Notes under the pieces: model-generated
What the model saw: only the letters and a program-made list of their open reading frames with translations
Told to the model about the DNA's origin: nothing
Database searches by the model: none
Translations under genes and position numbers: made by a program
Assembly: GCA_000708835.1 (NCBI GenBank)
Contig: DF237044.1
Location: 145,762-209,761 of the forward strand
Direction: 5' to 3'
DNA from: Klebsormidium nitens
Lineage: Eukaryota > Plantae > Klebsormidiophyceae
Length of the DNA stretch: 64,000 bases
Shown: positions 6,697 through 38,201 of the stretch, one piece after another
Position numbering within the stretch: position 1 is the first letter of the stretch
Layout: each line of letters begins with the position of its first letter

Positions 6697-15586
<8,890 letters not shown>

Positions 15587-26900: not shown

Positions 26901-28243
26901 CCTGATCGCTGAATTGGCTACATCTTTGAAATAACCCCAGCTGTCTTGGGGTGGGACCTCAGTAAGATGATATCTGAGCGACACTCCCGTACATGAAAAC
27001 AGGTGCCAATCATTGTCTGCCTCGCTGCCCAACCTTGCACCCTATGACCTAGCGCAGAAAGGTCTTGAACACATTCTGAGCATGATTGCTCATGGTGTAT
27101 GCTTTGGCCCCATCGTAAAGAGAGCCCCAATGTGCAACAAGGAAGGTCGTAACTTGAAAGACTCTGCTCAAAGCCAAACCTTGAGAAACTGTCCCGTTCA
27201 AGAACTGCTCACCATCCCAATTCGCAGCGGCGGATTGTCCTCGTCGCTGATCAGCCCTTCCCTCTTCTTGCCACAGACCCAGACCTCACCCTGTACAACA
27301 AAAGGACTTTTTCTGCAAATGTACTTACTGCTGTTAGAGTTCGTGCGTTTGCAATAATGGCAGACAATGATGGGAAAGACGAAAGATGAGTCACATTTCA
27401 AATGCAGGCGGCGCAGTTTATTGTGCTTAGACCCTGCATGAAGGTACAAACTGGCTTGCTTTCGTCTTGCCCTGTGGTTGAGGTTTCTGGTATGTGAAAA
27501 GTCCCGTTAGATGAGCGTATCAGGGAGCTTAAACGGCAACCCTCCTTCAGGTGTGCTTGCTCAATTGGCCCCCCGGCAAAAGAGTCGGTTGGAACATTCT
27601 TCCACTTGCGCCAAACCGTTATCCTGTATCTTTGAGAAAGGGCCTAATGCATACACCAGCAAGAACTGCAGAAAGGCAGATGACGCACCTTGTCTGGTTC
27701 CAGAAGACCCGCCATGATTCTCAGAATGGTCGATTTTCCTGTCCCCGAAGGCCCAATGATCCCCACCGCCTCCCCATGCCTGATCTTGAAGCTAGCGCCA
27801 CGCAGAATGTGCTTATCTCCAAACGACTTGTACACGTCTTTGCACTCAATCAGCACCTCTCCGTTTTCCTCTACGTCTTCCATTCGTTCGGGGCTGGCCG
27901 GGGCCGCTACAAATGCGCTGCATCTAGTTCTCCTGGCTTGCCGACTCCTTCCATCCTGTTGTTCCCTTGCTCCGCCAAACTCACACCTCGCATTCCAAAA
28001 TGCTGATGCCACTGCTTCAGATGCATTCCTTCTTTGTGAGGGGCTTGTTTCATGCTTTGCTTCGAGGGGGGTGCTTGCATGCACAGACTCTGGTCTGCAC
28101 TGGCAGAGTTGATTTTGGGACGGCCAAACAAGGGGCAGAGGTTGCAAATGAGCTCCAAAAAGCGTACCTTGGTGAAAGGATCGACAAGTTGCTATTGAGG
28201 GTTGAAAAACCGCCCCCAATTGTAGCATGGGAGTCGCAAGCAT
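23910..28243 (-). CDS. TGD3: Plastid lipid-import ABC ATPase TGD3 (ABCI13), about 395 aa, 7 exons
   Basis: Exons 27689..28243, 27213..27290, 26729..26790, 26369..26444, 25209..25501, 24344..24428 and 23910..23948 join in frame. Walker [10 protein letters not shown]-loop [11 protein letters not shown], signature [13 protein letters not shown], Walker [24 protein letters not shown]-loop [10 protein letters not shown]-terminus GPIKY*. Long transit-peptide-like N-terminus. Confidence 0.95.
25082..25218 (-). repeat. Three tandem 45-47 bp copies of the TGD3 exon-5 donor junction
   Basis: The unit ttcgac(t/c)ctaacccgcgtc...gaccc(a/t)cctgtcaaccg starts at 25082, 25127 and 25174. Each unit carries the exon end GTTGACAG and the adjacent intron start. 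Confidence 0.9.
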
Positions 28244-29051: not shown

Positions 29052-32000
29052 ATGCTCGCCTGCTCTCTGCCAAACGCATTGGCACACAGGTGTTCCGCCT
29101 TCAGCGGTAGCAGCAAAACAGGCAAAATTCTGATCAGAACCGCTCCTCACGCTACCACATTGCAGGCACCGCTCTGCAAAATCCACTCTTCTAGTGCAGC
29201 AAACGCTCTTTGCAAAGCGACCACCATTTTGGGTTTGCCGCTGAGATCCTGTGCTAACTTAGCAAGTAGCCCTAGCTTCAGGTATCGCTCTGCCTTTTCT
29301 GCGCAAATCGAAACCCTCTGTCCTGTTGAAACCGGCGGGTTAGCTTCCAAACCTCAGGGTTTCGTGTCCAAATCAGTTGGAAGTCCATCTGAAATGGCCT
29401 CCAAGCGAAAGGCCCCCTCGCGCGGCGCAGAGGGTGCGGACGTCAAAGAACTCCTCGAGAAAGCTGTCAAGAAGGGCAAAAATGCAGCTGGAAAAGCCGT
29501 AGAGTCGACAGCGGGCGCCGTGAAAGACGCGGCGGGGGGCGCCGCGAAAGCGGTCAAGAAGGCCACCGAGAAAGTGGCGGAGGTGCCAAAAGCAGCTGCG
29601 AAAGCTGTCTTACCGTCCAGCGCAAAGGACGAAGGAGCGGGGCCTTCGTCGAAGACACCTCCGCTGTCGAGATTACCCGCTGACCTCAACAAGTTGGTTG
29701 ACCCGAAGCGGGTTATGACGCTACGGGAGGGAGAAGTCACGGGGACTGGGCCTGTGTTGTATTGGATGTCAAGAGACCAGCGGTCAGCGGACAACTGGGC
29801 TCTGTTATATGCAATCGAGCAAGCGCACAAGCAGGGTTCGTCGGTCGCGGTTATCTTTAACCTGGTCCCAAGATTCCTGCACGCGGGAGCACGGCATTTC
29901 GGGTTTATGCTGAGGGGGCTGCGGGTTATGGAGAAGAACCTGAAAGAGAAGGACATTCCGTTCTTCATTGTCCAGGTGAGACTGGTAGATATTGAGTCCT
30001 TCTATGCAGGCACCCCCTGCTTTTACAAGCAGACAAGCAGATTGTGTCATGGCCTCCTTGTTGTTTCTCACCGATTGCCAACTTGAAACAGGGCACAGAG
30101 CTCACCCTTTGTTACCATGACGTTTGCACACACACTTGTTGGTTGATTGCCTCATTAGTACTGAAACTCAGGCGTATCCTCACGGCATCGCCAGAAGAAG
30201 CCTTCGCAAGACCGGACCTCAGAGAAGAGAAATAAACAGGTACATGTGAGAGTTTCTTATTCCATTCTGTAAAGAGCTACACCTCACTGGCCCGCTTGTC
30301 AAGACCACTGTTTTCAACTCTCTCCCCACTCTGCCTGGAATCGTCATCGGCTCCGACCTCTATAAGCAATTGAAACGTCCTCACTTGATTAAACCCTTCA
30401 TTCTGATGATGATTCCTCTTTCGATAGGGAGAGCCCGTTGACACTATTGTCCAGTTCGTTGCCAAAGTGGGCACCTCGCTCCTAGTTACCGACTTCTCGC
30501 CTCTCCGGATCGCGCGGGAATGGAAGGGGGGTGTGTGCAGCTTGGTAAACATCCCCGTGCACCAAGTGGATGCGCACAACGTGGTGCCCACGTGGGTGTG
30601 TTCGGACAAGCAAGAGTGAGTGATGAAAGCTGTCCGAACTCGTCAATCTCGGACTGCGGCATGGAAGAATGTTGAGGTCGTTCCAGGGAGTGTTGCGACC
30701 GAGTCTGAGGGCGTATGCTCCTGGAAATAAGTTGGATTCCGAGAGTTCTGGCAACCCATGCGGACTCTTTTCAAATAGGGTGGCTACGTGTATATTTGAA
30801 GGTTTGTCCGAAACTATGTCTTGGGAGTGTCAAAGGTTCCTTCAAGTGCGTCCATTGACGTACTTGTGCTTCAGGGCTGTCTCCAACCAATTCTGTTGCT
30901 GCAAATCGTTGAAAACGTATTAAGGGACCATTTCCTTGCAGGTAAGATGCGTGTACGACGTAGGATTCCATACCAAGATGCACCACCAATTGCCGGAGTT
31001 CCTGGTAGAATACGCCCATTTAACTTTCCAACAACCCCAACAAGGGGAAACTCGAGCTGCCTTCTTATATCATTTCGAGCGTTCGATTTTTTTGGGTACA
31101 GTGCGCGTACAATCTGGACCAAGGTCCACCGCAACCTGCCAGAGTTTTCGGTATAGTATTCCGGATTTATCATTCAAGCCGGATTTATCATTCAAGCCCA
31201 ACAAACGAACCCTCGAGCCGCCCGCTTGTAACAATTCAGCGCCCACATTTTGTCGGTATGGTGCGTGAACAATCCGGACCAAGGTCCACCGCAACCTTCC
31301 CGAGTTTCTGGTAGAGTACCCCGACTTTACCAAATAACCCCAACAAACAAACCCTTTAGCCGCCCGCTTATATCGTTTCGGGCGCCCAAATGTCGCAGGT
31401 ACGGTGCCCGCACAATCCGGAACAAGGTCCACCGCAACCGCCTAGCAGAGTACCCCGGGTTTACCAAATAACCCCAACAAAGGAGACACTCGAGCCGCCC
31501 ACTTATAACGATTCGAGCGTCCGACTTTCGTAGGTACGGTGCGCGAACCATCCGGACCAAGGTCCACCGCAACCTGCCGGAGTTCCTAGTAGAGTATCCC
31601 GAGCTGCCTTCCAACCCCAACAAGTGGGCTCTCGAGCCGCCCGCGCCGATCGACTGGGAGGCGTTGCTGAAGATCGTCCTGTCCAACAAGGCGGTACGTC
31701 AGGATCTTAAGACGGTTATTGCAATGGTCACTTGCGCAGAAATCCAGGGTCAGGCGAAAAGTAGCGGAGGGGGCGGCCTGCGTTTCTGTTATTCTCCAGA
31801 TGTTTGTGCCTTCACGTGACTTGCTGTTTGTGCTTTGTCCAGTGGCGGAAAAGTGATGAATTGCAAGCCAAGACAAGGAAAAGATCCCGTCGTGCAGCAC
31901 AAGGTGGTTCTATCTTGCGCTTGTGTTGCTGCCCGGCATCTTGACTCTTGCGCGTGTGTTGCTGCCCGGCATCTTGACACGACGTTTTGTTATACACGAC

Positions 32001-35000
32001 AACATTAACGAGCCCACAACATCCGAGATTTGGTGGTAGGACCCGTGTCTGTTTTCTAGTAAACCCGTTGGCACGTATGGTAGCAAACTCAATCTACGGT
32101 CAATGAGTTCCTCCAAGGGTGGAGGCGTACTTGTTTTAAAAGTGTTCCTTTTCCACGTCCTCTCTGTAAAAGGAAGTCGAGCCAATACTTTTGCATTTGC
32201 GTTGTAGTTTCCCGTCGAAGGCGTCCAGAAACCGTAGTCACGGATATGCTTTGTCAGGCCGAATCGTTGCGACTTCCACCGTTCAGTCTCCATTTGTCTC
32301 CGCCCCCCGTTCTTATAAGCAGCGGCCGGACATCGACTGGGCGTTTTCAAGGAAGACGCTGGCATGGAGCGACTCCTGAAGGGCTTCCTCGACGACCAAC
32401 TACTTTCTTTCATCATATATTCCCTTGCTTCTTATATAAGCGGGCGCTGGAGATCAACTGGGCGATACCGGGGAGGACGCCGGCATGGAGTGGCTCCTGA
32501 AGCTCTATATCGTTGGATTTATCCTGAATTTTCTTTATATTTTTCTTTCCGCTTGTCAAATCTCATAATTCGAATATATCCCCTTCCTCTTATCGTAAGC
32601 AGGTGCCAAAGATTGACTGGGCAATACGCGGGGAGGACGCCGGGATGGAGAGGCTCCTGAAGCTCTATTTCATTGCAATTCTCCTGGATTTCCTCTTTTT
32701 CTCCGCTTGTCCAATTTCTTAATTCAAATATCCCTTTTTCTTTCATCATAAGCAGGTGCCAGAGATCGACTGGGCGGTGCGCGGAGAAGATGCCGGCATG
32801 GAGTGGCTCCTCAAATCCATTCTCGTTGGATTTTTTTAGTATTTCTTCCGCTTGTCAATATCAAGAATCCGAATACATCCTTTCCCCTTTTGTTATAAGC
32901 AGGTGCCGGAGATTGACTGGGCGGTGCCTGGAGAGGACGCCGGGATGGAGTGGCTCCTAAAGCGCTTCCTCGGAAAAGGGATTGCCAAATACGACGCTGA
33001 CCGGAACGACCCGACGATCCCCACCGGAGTCTCAGGGATGTCCCCTTACTTGCACTACGGCAACGTCGCGGCGCAGGCAAGCAACCGCAGATGCCGAGAT
33101 CAAAGTCCCCTTTACGTTTGTTTGACTTCATCTTTTTACTGTTGCCGTTCAACCTAGTCGGCGTCGTATGTTGAGTACCTCTTGGTATTTTGTGTCGATG
33201 GAGTGCGTGTCTGCTTCGGCTTTGGTTTGGTTTCTGACTGCCTTCCATGGATCAGAGATCTGTTGAGATTCGAGTTTGAAAAACCGATGAAGTTAAAGAA
33301 TAGATTTCGATACTTTCGGTGTAAACAGGCTTCGATACGATTTGTAGGAACGGGCACTCGCAATACGCTTGTTCCTCAGTATTACTCGCTTCTTCCAATC
33401 CTCACTTCAGGGTTGACACCTTGATAGCAGAGAAGTGCGTCAACTTTTGTATGTGGGAGAGCACACAGAATTTCTTTATTTTCCTTCTAACTACCGGCAT
33501 CTTCAGTCCCCAATGCACATCAGAAACTCAAACATCGATATAGACTGGGGTGCGGGACTCTCAACAGTAGAGAGAGCTCTCCTTTTTTTTCCTTTCTCGA
33601 CCTTTTTCAGATCTTGCACAAGTCTCAGACCTTGTTCACTCCAGGAGTTTGCATTCTTCAAGAACTCCCAAAGATGGAAAGTCGACGAGTCCGCAAGACG
33701 GGCCATTGCACTTAACCAGATCTGAACAGCGGCGGGGTTCATCGCTTGCGTTAAGAAAAAGAATTTCTCCTAGCAAAGTAGGCAGCAATCCTTTCCAGGG
33801 CTGTTTTACAGGTCCACGCGACTTGCCCAGAGGACGTTGCTTTGTGTATTATTAGTCTGTGATATTTTCCTGTGTTATTGATTAACGGTTATCAATCTGT
33901 TAACAATCTGCTTGATTTGTGCAGCGAGCGGCACTCGAGGCGCGCAAGTACCGTAAGAGCCACCCGAAGGCGGTGGACGCTTTCCTGGAGGAGCTGATCG
34001 TTCGACGGGAGCTGTCGGACAACTACTGCTACTACCAGCCCAACTACGACAACGTGAGCCGCCGGAATCTTCCAGCTTATGTTCCATGACCGTTCCCCAT
34101 CACTTGGAGTTCAATACATCCAAGCTCCGCGGTTGTGATCCGTGAGTTTGCGATAGGGAAGACGGGGAGCAGTCCCTTTGCTTTATCAGCTAATCGACAA
34201 CGACAAATGATGCGCTCCGACTCTTGCCACCTATAAAGCTCCTACTTAACCCCACCTTTTCTTCTGGCCATAACCTTCTGCTGCCTTGATCTGGCCCAAC
34301 GGAAGTTAGGTATACTCACGTCACCCTCCCTCTCCAGATCTGCAAAACCGCGTCTCTGCGCCAAGGGGGACGCTGTAGAATTGTTTTGGAGCGACTTGAC
34401 GTCTTTGCACAAGTACGCCGATGACTCCATGCTGACGTCACCCCATTTTCTCGCATTCGCAAGGCGCGTTCATCTGTGCGCAGGAGATACTTCAGGTTCC
34501 CGAACTGAATCATGTTACATGACTTCAAAAGTCCGCTGATGGAGCTACGCTGACGCCACCCTGTCTCCTCGCAGCTGCTCGGTTCGTTCTTGTGGGAGGG
34601 GAAGTCGCTGCAAAGAGCTCGCCGAGCAGATTGCACCCAGAACACTGTATGACGTCAGCGCAGACGTCGGGTTTGCCTGCGCCACCATGCTGACGTCACT
34701 CTGTATTATCGCAGCTGTGATGCGCGTTCCCATGGGCGCAGGAGCCAACCCGGAGAATTCGTGGAAGCAGATGTTTCGGGGAACCACGTGACGTCATTGC
34801 AGGCGTCTGCCGCTGATATGTTGACGTCACCCTGTTTCCCCGCAGCTGCAAGGCGCGTTCCTGTAGGCGCGGGAGAAGCTGCAGGGGCTCTGCAGAGCGT
34901 AGTGAACGTGACGTCATTTCAGCTGTCCGCCGATGGAAGTATGCTGACGTCTCTCCATCTTCTCGAAGCTTGCATTCGACAGCACCACGCTGACGTCACC

Positions 35001-37190
35001 TCGTCTCCCCGCAGCTGCAAGGCGCGTTCCCGTGGGCGCGCGAGTCGCTGCAGAAGCACGCGGCCGACCCGCGCGAGTACGTGTACACCAAGGAGCAACT
35101 AGAGAAGGGGCAGACGTACGACGAGCTGTGGAACGCGAGCCAGCACGAGATGGTGCACCATGGCAAGATGCACGGCTTCATGCGGTGAGGGTAGGACGTA
35201 CTTTTGCCGCTTGTGATTCTTTGATTATACTATGGATGTACGTCCCATTTGAGAAGTACACGCAAAATAGCACCGGCAAGATGCACGGATTCATGCGGTG
35301 GGGCGATAGGGATTTGTTGATTCCACTCCGGAAGTGCGTTCCACTCGGAAAGTATACGCAGGGTAGCCACGATGAGTCACGACAGGATGCACGATTGTAT
35401 GCGGTGAGGGCAGACGCTGCGATTGTGCGTGTTTGAGTTCGAGTCAAGAAGTATGCGCACAATTAGCGACATTCACCATGGCGAGATGCATGGTGAGAAC
35501 TGTGATGTTTGGGATCGAAGATTCGGCTTGTAGCAAACGTGTGCATTGCTGACGACGTTTAACGCCTTGTTTATCATGTGGAAAAGGGCTAACTTAAGAA
35601 AGCAGCTCGAATCCCCCGCACAGCAACACAACTCTGTGCTTCACAGCCAGATTCGGCATGTATGCAAAGACACGTAGTTGCCGCAAGCTACACACTAAAT
35701 ATTCTGAGGCTTGAAGCGATCCGGGGTGTGTTTTGAAACCCTAGTTCACGTCGCACAGAGACTAGTACAGTTTAATTCAAGGTTACAACGCCCTGCAATG
35801 GACCAGGACCACTTCGAAGCGACGAAGCTCAATTTTGCACCCGGCCCCTTGAACCGGGCTCCTTGCTGACTTCGGTCTGACGTCAGCTTCTTCCCCCTTG
35901 CAGGATGTACTGGGCGAAGAAGATTCTGGAGTGGACTCCATCCCCCGAAGAAGCCCTGGCGATCGCTATCGAGCTCAACGACAAGGTTTGTAGTCCTGTT
36001 TTGTGCACTGATTGGTGACGGAGACGTGTCTGCCAGTGATTTCTGACTTTCTGCTTGTTCTGATCTCTTCTGCTTCCTGGTTGTGAGAAACTACTTAGAC
36101 TGGCAGCGTTTCTTTCTCTTCGGACCTTTTGAACTCCTCACAAGAGCCCCTAGGTTAAAATACGCCGTTTGGAAAGAGTGAGAGTTCATGAATTAAGGGC
36201 AGAGAAGACCTTCGCACCGCATTCTTCGCAAGGTCATTTGAAGCCGCGAAAATTGAACTGGAGAGTTCTTGCGATGCGTGCAGTACCAGATCGACGGCCG
36301 AGATCCCAACGGTTATGTCGGCTGCATGTGGTCCATTGCGGGGCTCCATGACCGGGTTAGTGAACCCCGTCCTAATCCATTTATTTCCGGCCCGGTTTTC
36401 TCAGTTTTCTTTCCACTTTTCTTTGCAGTACGAGATTGACGGCCGGGACCCGAATGGGTACGTCGGCTGCATGTGGGCGATCGCCGGTGTCCACGACCAG
36501 GTGAGGTCAGCAGTGACGTCACGTGTGCCTTGCTTGAGCTTTTGACACAAGGCACGTACCAGGCGCGGTGAGGTTCCGCGTCGACCAAAAGCTGCTTGGC
36601 TCGCCAGCTTCGCATCTCCGGTCCGCGTACAGCTTTGTACAGTACCGCTGCGGCTAAAATCTGTACTCGGTCTGTACTTTTGATATTACGTGATCGATTG
36701 AAGCGTTCTCATTGGTTCTGACGACCGGAGATGAGCGCTCAGCCCATTCCGGTCAACGCGGAACTCAGGGTGTAAGCTCAGAAAGGTTCCGCAGCTGTTG
36801 GACTGTGGTCGGATGGAGCGCTTCTGCGATACAACAGCTTTTGGATTTTGAACGATACGCGAAGCTCTTGCACGCAGGTCCGACCAATATAAGAGTGTCG
36901 AACCGATTGAGAACCACGCCCCTTGTTACCGAAGGACTTGCCGAACCACGGACGAAACTTGATTGATATCTGGATGGACTCTTGAATCCAAGTTCGAAGC
37001 CAAACTTCATATTTCGTGTTTGTAGGGCTGGGGCGAGCGGCCAATCTTCGGCAAGATTCGGTACATGAACTACGCGGGGTGCAAGCGCAAGTTCAAGGTC
37101 GACAAATACGTGGCTTACGTCAACAAGCTGATGTCAGACTTGAAGACGAAGGGGAAGAGCTCTGCAGCGCGCGAGAAGAAGCCCGTCTAG
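29052..37190 (+). CDS. PHR1: Class II CPD photolyase (PHR1/UVR2), about 687 aa from the first ATG or about 573 aa from the ATG at 29394
   Basis: Exons 29052..29975, 30428..30615, 31534..31693, 32903..33076 (GC donor), 33925..34053, 35015..35184, 35904..35985, 36429..36500 (or 36284..36355) and 37026..37190 join in frame. Motifs: [109 protein letters not shown]. Confidence 0.97.
30935..31533 (+). repeat. Four degenerate copies of the photolyase intron-2 acceptor plus the start of exon 3
   Basis: A core resembling aaggtccaccgcaacc occurs at 30975, 31121, 31281 and 31424, and in the true exon at 31559. Period is 135-160 bp. Confidence 0.9.
32300..32902 (+). repeat. Four degenerate copies of the photolyase intron-3 acceptor plus the start of exon 4
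   Basis: Units of the form taagcag|gtgcc..gactgggcg..gaggacgccgg.atggag start near 32323, 32443, 32603 and 32756. The true exon starts at 32903. Confidence 0.9.
34425..35014 (+). repeat. Degenerate copies of the photolyase intron-5 branch site/acceptor plus the start of exon 6
   Basis: g(c/t)tgacg(t/c)c(a/t) occurs at 34431, 34549, 34689, 34820, 34943 and the true site at 34989. Most are followed by cgcag|ctg...gcgcgttc. Confidence 0.85.
35185..35500 (+). repeat. Copies of the photolyase exon-6 donor junction, period about 110 bp
   Basis: The junction gatgcacg..tcatgcg|gt recurs with GT at 35298 and 35404 (true GT at 35185). A further fragment lies near 35475. Confidence 0.8.
36284..36355 (+). 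CDS. PHR1: Alternative 72-nt copy of photolyase exon 8 ([24 protein letters not shown]), candidate mutually exclusive exon
   Basis: Flanked by GTGCAG and GTTAGT. Same length and phase as exon 36429..36500, with no stop or indel. Confidence 0.6.
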
Positions 37191-38201
37191 AACGAATACT
37201 TGTCTTTTAAATTGGAAGCAATCTGCTCCTATACCTAGTTGCAGTGGATGATGTGAAGAGTTGCGTAAAAAAGCTGTCGTGTACAGTCTGTCAATGCCTG
37301 TTTGCCCGGCACCAAATGGTGGTCTGACATCTTTCACGTGAGAGTCAGTTGATAAGCTTGATCTGGAACCATCAACAACTGACATTACAGTGCGCCTAGT
37401 ATTAGCGTCACGCTCAGACAAACGTTCCGCTTCTTGAGACAACAAACTAAGCAAGCATAAGTTGACAGTCACGATGCCATGTGAGATCGTTGGGCAGGAA
37501 AACATATTGGAATTGAACTCGGGACTTTGAGCAGAGGTTATCCATGAGCATGACGCAGGCTAAATTTCGACGTCTGCAGAAATTGAGCACGCTCTTTGTT
37601 TCTGTGTCCGGCCGGGGCCCCGTAATTCGCATTGATGCTTGCGCGCGCAGTCACTCATGCGCATTGATGAGTCGTTTCGATTGTGCGCGGCGCACCTTCG
37701 GCGATATTTTTTTGCGGGCCGGAGCCCCCCGGCCCGCATATGTATTGCAAGGCGCTAGACGACGCGCGGTACCTTTCACCATGCAGGCATGTGCTGATCC
37801 AACATGACCCAGCGTCGCAGCGCATCAGATTACCATATGTTATCATGATGCAAGCTTACATGCAGGCTTTGATTAGGACATATGTCCGCTAGCTCCGTCG
37901 ATAAACATGTGCGCTTAATCAGCTATATGTATGCGCACTTTCAGGTCGTCACCCAACCGTCAGGTTAGAGATACTGGGAGTCCATTTCAACGAATCCGTC
38001 AAATATAATCATTCAATCCACGTCATCCTGAATGTATAATAAAACATTTGAACTGGGCGTCACGTTGACATTCGGCATTAAGGAGATCTTGCAAGGATAG
38101 GCCATTCGACTTTTTATCGAGCTAGCTACAGACGTTTGTTTCTGAAGAACTCGGTAGCCATAAGATAGATGCAGCAAAACTGGCCCCATAGCTCACCTTC
38201 T

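Follow-up and report, generated by a model that had tools for sequence, protein, structure and literature searches.

The window analyzed here is a 64,000-nt stretch of the genome of the streptophyte alga Klebsormidium nitens (contig DF237044.1 of assembly GCA_000708835.1, positions 145,762 to 209,761 of the forward strand), and all coordinates given without further reference are positions within it. On its + strand, between 29394 and 37190, lies the nine-exon gene of GAQ81945.1, a class II cyclobutane pyrimidine dimer (CPD) photolyase of 573 residues, whose eighth exon is present in two adjacent homologous versions: exon 8a (A), of the Arg type, at 36284–36355, and exon 8b (B), of the Gln type, at 36429–36500, separated by a 73-nt spacer (36356–36428). 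The GAQ81945.1 model takes 8b. We consider it fairly probable that 8a and 8b are a conserved either/or pair of tandem-duplicated alternative exons, with 8b as the default and 8a rare or conditional.

Structure of the photolyase gene and its twin exons

The NCBI record of GAQ81945.1 is titled 'Deoxyribodipyrimidine photolyase/cryptochrome [Klebsormidium nitens]', and the protein is identical to the gene model built here (P0003), in which the exon edges were set by peptide matches and splice sites. The 573 codons of the model with 8b form an open frame throughout, the N-terminal DNA photolyase domain (PF00875) was present as a precomputed Pfam match, and a gap-free alignment with the photolyases of Methanosarcina mazei (2XRY) and rice (3UMV) recovered the class II signature residues, namely the equivalents of Asn403/Asp404, Trp421, Asp428, Trp431, and Arg441. 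Judged by these features, the gene product is a class II CPD photolyase, for which light-driven repair of cyclobutane dimers is predicted.

Exons 8a and 8b are each 72 nt long and in phase 0, with AG before and GT after, and no indel or stop distinguishes the copies. The 16 nucleotide differences comprise 12 at third, three at first, and one at second codon positions and cause four replacements in all (Gln/Glu, Ser/Ala, Leu/Val, and Arg/Gln, in the order 8a/8b). The similarity is limited to 36279–36360 and 36424–36505, that is, to the exons plus 5 nt of splice consensus on each side (z = 19 versus shuffles), and the spacer resembles neither flank (z about −1); such loss of flank similarity is a weak clock, since the spacers of the repeat ladders of the same gene, described below, diverge more slowly than third positions do. 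The period of the 8a/8b repeat is 145 nt. A single CTRAY-type motif was found in the spacer, CTAAT at 36372–36376, the A of which lies at +20 from the 8a donor (CGG/gttagt), and the pyrimidine-rich tract that follows leads to the 8b acceptor, the strongest of the gene (19 of 22 pyrimidines). The donor of 8b is CAG/gtgagg. An initial annotation, made from the sequence letters alone, had proposed a mutually exclusive exon pair at this site, and its account of the exon lengths, phase, splice dinucleotides, and differences, and of the 73-nt spacer with a branch-like motif 20 nt from the donor and a long pyrimidine tract behind it, was confirmed in every respect.

In gap-free alignments, 8a and 8b each match chain residues 424–447 of rice PhrII (3UMV) and M. 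mazei MmCPDII (2XRY), residues that have the native numbering 406–429 in 2XRY. Trp16 of the exon corresponds to M. mazei Trp421, Asp23 to Asp428, and the last residue to position 429, which is Arg in 8a and Gln in 8b; the Ser of 8a and the Ala of 8b adjoin the Trp421 equivalent. In the M. mazei enzyme, Trp421 stacks on the dimer and Asp428 is strictly conserved (PMC6126647, PMC9649867); Arg429 belongs to a trio of side chains that fill the unpaired bubble and touch the bases opposite the lesion, and Gln, Met, or His takes its place in other natural enzymes (PMC6126647). Asn403 and Asp404 are located at the flavin N5 (PMC9649867), and their equivalents in K. nitens lie in exon 7 (35904–35985), as the Asn-Asp pair of ELNDK. 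Because the flavin-N5 pair is encoded by exon 7, and Trp421 and position 429 by the exchanged segment, the two isoforms would differ on the DNA side and not, as had been suggested from the sequence, around the flavin pocket. All four 8a-specific residues occur in active or natural relatives, and Gln at exon position 2 is natural in other photolyases.

The remaining exons are on the same strand. Exons 1, 2, and 3 (29394–29975, 30428–30615, and 31534–31693) and exon 5 (33925–34053) were defined by peptide matches and splice sites. Exon 4 (32903–33076) ends at a GC donor at 33077 (CAG/gcaagc), the resulting GC-AG intron being required by the NCBI protein model. Exon 6 occupies 35015–35184. The intron between exons 7 and 8a (35986–36283) has an in-frame TGA at 36013–36015, and the intron behind 8b (36501–37025) leads to exon 9 (37026–37190, to the stop codon), which carries the Trp431 and Arg441 equivalents.

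Use of the two exons in RNA

Assembled RNA contigs from one run of each of four studies were compared with 34200–37300; assembled contigs can drop rare forms. The runs contained spliced joints and therefore represent RNA. The joints 35184>35904 (exons 6 and 7), 35985>36429 (exons 7 and 8b), and 36500>37026 (exons 8b and 9) were recovered in all four runs at depths of 20 to about 200, and in two runs a single contig spanned all four of these exons. These results demonstrated that 8b is the default exon and that the neighboring 35985 donor and 37026 acceptor, on which the initial annotation had relied, are in use.

Exon 8a was covered only by low-depth contigs, at 11.1 in run X1 and 12.5 in run X3, where the 8b path reached 197 and 160, respectively. 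These contigs start in exon 7 and continue unspliced through the intron into 8a (35956–36356 in X1, 35956–36354 in X3). In X3 the contig passes from the 8a donor (36354/5) to exon 9 (37025/6), with GT..AG ends and at depth 12.5, and skips 8b; in X1 it breaks off precisely at 36356, after which a continuation into the spacer and one into exon 9 would no longer coincide, and this fits branching at that point. Thus, the 8a donor is live, and it bypasses the strong 8b acceptor only 73 nt away and joins exon 9, the acceptor of which serves the donors of both 8a and 8b. No 36355>36429 joint (8a to 8b), no 35985>37026 joint (exon 7 to exon 9), and no 35985>36284 joint (exon 7 to exon 8a) was found in the contigs of the four runs, so that 8a and 8b were never spliced together in this material. 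The junction pattern expected of exclusive exons was therefore recovered in part: both 8b joints were present in every run, 36355>37026 was present in X3, and 8a-to-8b joining was absent, as predicted; the entry into 8a from exon 7, which was predicted as well, was not seen in any run.

Exon 8b was found in mature mRNA in four of four runs; for 8a the only junction seen was that of its donor, 36355>37026, on an intron-retaining contig of one run. Given the in-frame TGA in the retained intron, the 8a-containing RNA observed is nonproductive. The depths bound the inclusion of 8a to a few percent at most in the sampled runs, with the proviso that rare forms may escape contigs. A word search with the 60-residue open frame around 8a, made for RNA-derived 8a fragments, returned two distant genomic open reading frames only.

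The structure of these transcripts bears on a second reading, in which 8a is regulatory and its donor diverts transcripts into a premature-stop form (exon 7, intron, and 8a joined to exon 9), tuning the output of the gene. The only 8a-containing RNA seen is exactly that form, and the intron before 8a is retained at a depth of 11–12.5, versus 6.3–7.4 for the preceding retained intron (X1, X3). However, a decoy donor needs no open reading frame, and regulation of this kind leaves unexplained the nine silent changes versus one replacement between 8a orthologues, the type-specific Ser17, Leu21, and Arg24, and the conserved AG acceptor, all of which are described below. We therefore regard a purely regulatory 8a as improbable.

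Two further observations concern the intron between 8b and exon 9. Short inverted repeats are dense at 36573–36914, where six pairs of 10–18 nt are not consistently nested. In addition, the approximately 71 nt at 36571–36641 are identical to part of another, more abundant transcript: a 44-nt contig of X3 reaches depth 54 there, and contigs of X1 and X3 continue into unrelated sequence on both sides. This segment, which is present in one copy in the window and has no Rfam match, may be a copied piece of an exon of another gene.

Intron repeat arrays and conservation of the twin exons

The introns of the photolyase gene carry at least four tandem arrays, at 30967–31650 (array 1), 32304–32995 (array 2), 34316–35053 (array 3), and 35159–35413 (array 4), in which 3–6 copies with a period of 106–169 nt repeat the neighboring exon edges. 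The 145-nt period of 8a/8b fits this series, and the arrays could serve as an internal control for the substitution pattern of the twin exons. In arrays 3 and 4, the differences from the true exon are spread evenly over the codon positions and stops are present. Arrays 1 and 2 show an excess at third positions ([24,14,37] and [12,6,29] over the three codon positions), despite stops, frameshifts, or partial exon cover, and this bias is only partly explained. The rung at 32756–32825, which cannot be an exon, gave a proportion of silent differences (pS) of 0.59 and a proportion of replacement differences (pN) of 0.07, close to the values for 8a versus 8b (pS 0.77, pN 0.07; simulation P ~0.001).

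These arrays give substance to the reading that 8a is a decaying relic, that is, another rung of the tandem exon-edge copies, with a silent bias that reflects the same artefact. It draws on the ladders in four intron regions and on the near-equal figures of the rung at 32756–32825, and the caveat attached to the original proposal, that nearby partial copies also show silent bias, holds. However, the rungs carry stops and frameshifts and vary in number between species, and the 8a–8b spacer has no residual flank similarity, unlike the ladder spacers.

A more direct test was offered by orthologues. A search with the frame of the first exon gave genomic contigs of two relatives, and one of them, the Joint Genome Institute (JGI) metagenome contig L084, spans the whole photolyase gene and is syntenic with the K. 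nitens locus. An ABC-transporter gene lies upstream of the photolyase gene in K. nitens (27677–28165, − strand), and the same neighbor is found in the relatives L083 and L084, which indicates that gene order is conserved. The intron arrays are also present in the same introns of L083 and L084, with copy numbers that differ between species and with stops in the rungs.

L084 has both exon copies, the Arg type at 13905–13976 and the Gln type at 14050–14121, in the same order as in K. nitens. Both are flanked by AG and GT, and the gttagt donor of 8a, the 145-nt period, and the spacer length of exactly 73 nt all recur; the expectation that the pair would be conserved in related species was thus borne out. 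The L084 spacer contains a single CTRA motif with its A at +17 from the 8a donor (+20 in K. nitens), and the two spacers are only 52% identical despite their equal length. The introns are approximately 45% identical between the two species (range 41–52%), those that flank the pair are 298 and 525 nt long in K. nitens but 708 and 630 nt in L084, and silent sites are near saturation in every exon (pS 0.47–0.82). Against this divergence, the 8a orthologues differ at 10 nt, nine of them silent (pS 0.57, pN 0.018, pN/pS 0.03), and the 8b orthologues at 12 nt, 11 of them silent (pS 0.75, pN 0.017, pN/pS 0.02), ratios that lie below those of the other exons of the gene (0.07–0.16). In neutral simulations, including GC-biased and third-position-biased mutation, the probability of at most one replacement in 10 changes was at most 3e-4.

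Across species 8a is closer to 8a, and 8b to 8b, than 8a is to 8b within a species, and the type-specific residues are kept in both species: Ser17, Leu21, and Arg24 in 8a versus Ala17, Val/Ile21, and Gln24 in 8b. Gene conversion was considered as the cause of the conservation of 8a and was ruled out by this grouping of the copies by type. The substitution pattern in the two species shows purifying selection on the 8a peptide as strong as that on the 8b peptide and identifies 8a as a coding exon maintained by selection, at least for the greater part of the period after the lineages diverged. If 8a were a relic, both orthologues would have run free, yet they show one replacement in 10 changes while the introns were randomized. 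As nine of the 10 changes are silent while the introns diverged, 8a is not a dead copy, contrary to the possibility raised when the pair was first described; with a pN/pS of 0.03, it evolves as 8b does. We therefore strongly disfavor the plain-relic reading and regard it as very improbable.

A possible pairing was also noted at the 8a donor. GCGGGG near the 3' end of 8a can pair with CCCC in the spacer, enclosing the donor, in both species (36338–36370; L084 13959–14007), and both silent third positions of this GCGGGG are identical between K. nitens and L084. We treat a donor-masking stem as a weak lead, since fold z-scores were not significant: RNA folding at the two acceptors and at the 8a donor yielded no significant structure in either species (z of −0.2 to +1.0). 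The 8a acceptor is spanned by a 17-nt inverted repeat with 76% complementarity, for which no significant fold was obtained in K. nitens, and an Rfam search of 35900–37100 returned no match.

Beyond these relatives, 78 related loci were compared, comprising the two distant loci of the 8a word search and those of an exon 9 scan of a metagenome collection in which no close relative was present, and in each of them the segment occurs once. In one land-plant-like contig, this single-copy segment is likewise a 72-nt exon in phase 0. Among approximately 190 homologous segments, those of eukaryotic green-lineage enzymes end in HDQ, and HDR was otherwise found only in prokaryote-type enzymes. The exception is Spirogloea muscicola, of which two protein models (P0105 and P0106; EukProt EP00850) contain the segment twice, HDQ and then HDR; P0105 reads through a 69-nt in-frame spacer, and P0106 joins both copies directly. 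From these proteins, S. muscicola looks like a second twin-exon case with models that are probably mis-joined. Its duplication may be independent of that in Klebsormidium, the 24 residues being compatible with a shared as well as a separate event; whichever its origin, a second streptophyte alga by these models keeps an Arg-type twin. A different arrangement was observed in P0104 of Armadillidium nasatum (696 residues), which has two C-terminal photolyase halves, the first with Ile for the lesion-stacking Trp, and which is probably a fused model of a gene and a partial, decaying tandem copy.

The S. muscicola models raise the further reading that both exons are included together in some mRNAs and yield a tandem 24-residue repeat, as P0106 is drawn. 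The 72-nt length would keep the frame, and P0106 and P0105 encode such proteins with and without direct joining of the copies. However, gene predictors commonly chain twin exons, the 8a-to-8b joint was absent from the contigs of the four runs, where splicing from the 8a donor led to exon 9 instead, and the segment is part of the lesion pocket, where, to judge from the solved structures, a repeat would not fit. Joint inclusion is, in our view, highly unlikely.

Proposed exon switch and comparison with known systems

We return to the either/or pair as the reading that we favor. Under this model, each mRNA would take 8a or 8b, and 8a would be chosen rarely or under conditions outside those sampled, because its acceptor is weak and would need activation. 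Exclusivity would arise from the 73-nt spacer, the only good branch motif of which lies 17–20 nt from the 8a donor: joining of 8a to 8b would be blocked because the putative branch site is too close to the donor for U1 and U2 to bind together. A limit of approximately 50 nt has been proposed for the simultaneous assembly of U1 and U2 in animals (PMC7969005). Any usable branch point in a 73-nt intron lies approximately 55 nt or less from the donor, and the limit, being that of animals, may not be that of the alga. Nonsense-mediated decay cannot enforce the exclusivity, since a 72-nt exon leaves the frame intact. Only four residues would distinguish the two enzymes, so the switch would tune the handling of DNA or of the lesion and not flavin binding. 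As to its origin, the pair probably arose from the same local process of ~145-nt tandem duplication that fills the introns with partial exon copies; here the process would have copied a whole exon, and the copy would then have been kept.

Several observations weigh against this model. With regard to the mechanism, introns of 73 nt are spliceable in many plants, and the branch site in the spacer is a prediction from the CTRA motif. With regard to function, the silent excess between 8a and 8b is insufficient as proof, as the near-equal figures of non-exon partial copies demonstrated. With regard to use, the acceptor of 8a is the weakest of the gene (10 of 22 pyrimidines versus 13–19 for the others), the joint from exon 7 to 8a was missing from the contigs of all four runs, all 8a-containing RNA retains the upstream intron with its premature stop and amounts to at most ~6–8% of the depth of the 8b path, and no K. 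nitens protein with the 8a peptide was found in the public protein collection (search with residues 440–573 and cluster look-up). Finally, the two-species test is blind to a recent end of 8a use in K. nitens itself and cannot tell it from continued use.

The last of these points leads to the reading that the ancestor used 8a as a working alternative exon, as the relative would do to this day, and that its inclusion ended recently in K. nitens; with the acceptor weakened, the donor alone would remain active and give rise to dead-end transcripts, a few percent of the total, that retain the intron and skip 8b. Consistent with such a loss, only the donor side of 8a is in use, always with the upstream intron retained, the poor pyrimidine content of the K. 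nitens acceptor contrasts with a clearer tract in the relative, gttctctctgtcactggatgcag, and comparison with other photolyases places the sole replacement that separates the 8a orthologues (Glu>Gln) on the K. nitens side. Yet 8a has kept its frame, its two splice sites, and every invariant residue, and Gln at the changed position occurs in other natural photolyases; moreover, with half of the 10 changes on the K. nitens branch, at most one replacement would be unlikely in a free-running exon (a rough estimate of about 0.03). We consider a recent loss unlikely.

We regard a switch between two photolyase forms as likely. We advance with more reserve, as a tentative proposal, that exon switching allows streptophyte algae, namely Klebsormidium and perhaps, by a separate origin, Spirogloea, to produce two class II photolyases from a single gene; these would differ at position 429 and beside the lesion-stacking Trp, the Arg form being specific to stress or life stage and preferring other lesions or DNA contexts. 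Selection on 8a versus its near-absence from the sampled RNA predicts a condition-specific isoform of this kind. The duplicated exon carries a contact residue to the unpaired bases opposite the ultraviolet (UV) lesion, for which nature uses Arg or Gln (PMC6126647). If the switch is real, one gene with Arg and Gln forms would be a natural experiment on the role of residue 429, and a repair enzyme would be added to the few exclusive exon pairs known outside animals. The twin exons would also be linked to their visible raw material, the ~145-nt tandem exon-edge copies that litter the introns of this genome.

To our knowledge, photolyases are treated as one-gene, one-enzyme repair proteins. A literature search found no report of exclusive exon choice in any photolyase; the exclusive choice between tandem-duplicated exons is itself a known kind of system. 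In alpha-tropomyosin (exons 2/3) and OGDH (exons 4a/4b), exons are exclusive because the branch point is too near the upstream donor (PMC7969005). The photolyase pair resembles these systems in its adjacent homologous exons of equal length and phase with a short intron between them, in the only good branch motif, which lies at much less than ~50 nt from the donor of the first exon and precedes a long pyrimidine tract, and in an upstream donor that skips the neighboring acceptor across a spacer whose length is kept between species. It differs from them in belonging to a DNA repair enzyme of a streptophyte alga, in that its branch site is predicted, and in that the upstream exon appears in RNA only on intron-retaining contigs. 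The pair is also comparable to the vertebrate U2AF1 exons Ab/3 and to human substitutions of tandem-duplicated exons (PMC5224494, PMC9741552, PMC9013439), in which the duplication is old, both copies are under purifying selection, the isoforms are identical outside a short homologous segment, and one copy has the weaker splice signals; in those cases, unlike here, where one isoform is documented in RNA, both are so documented and often also in protein. A further parallel is offered by the S. muscicola models SM000088S23707 and SM000124S25947, which have the 24-residue segment twice, with HDQ and HDR copies; they differ in that the Gln type comes first, the order being reversed, and the arrangement is known there from protein models alone. 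Among enzymes of solved structure, that of M. mazei (2XRY) has Arg at position 429, as does 8a, and that of rice (3UMV) has Gln, as does 8b; each has one fixed residue at this position, whereas the K. nitens gene could offer both.

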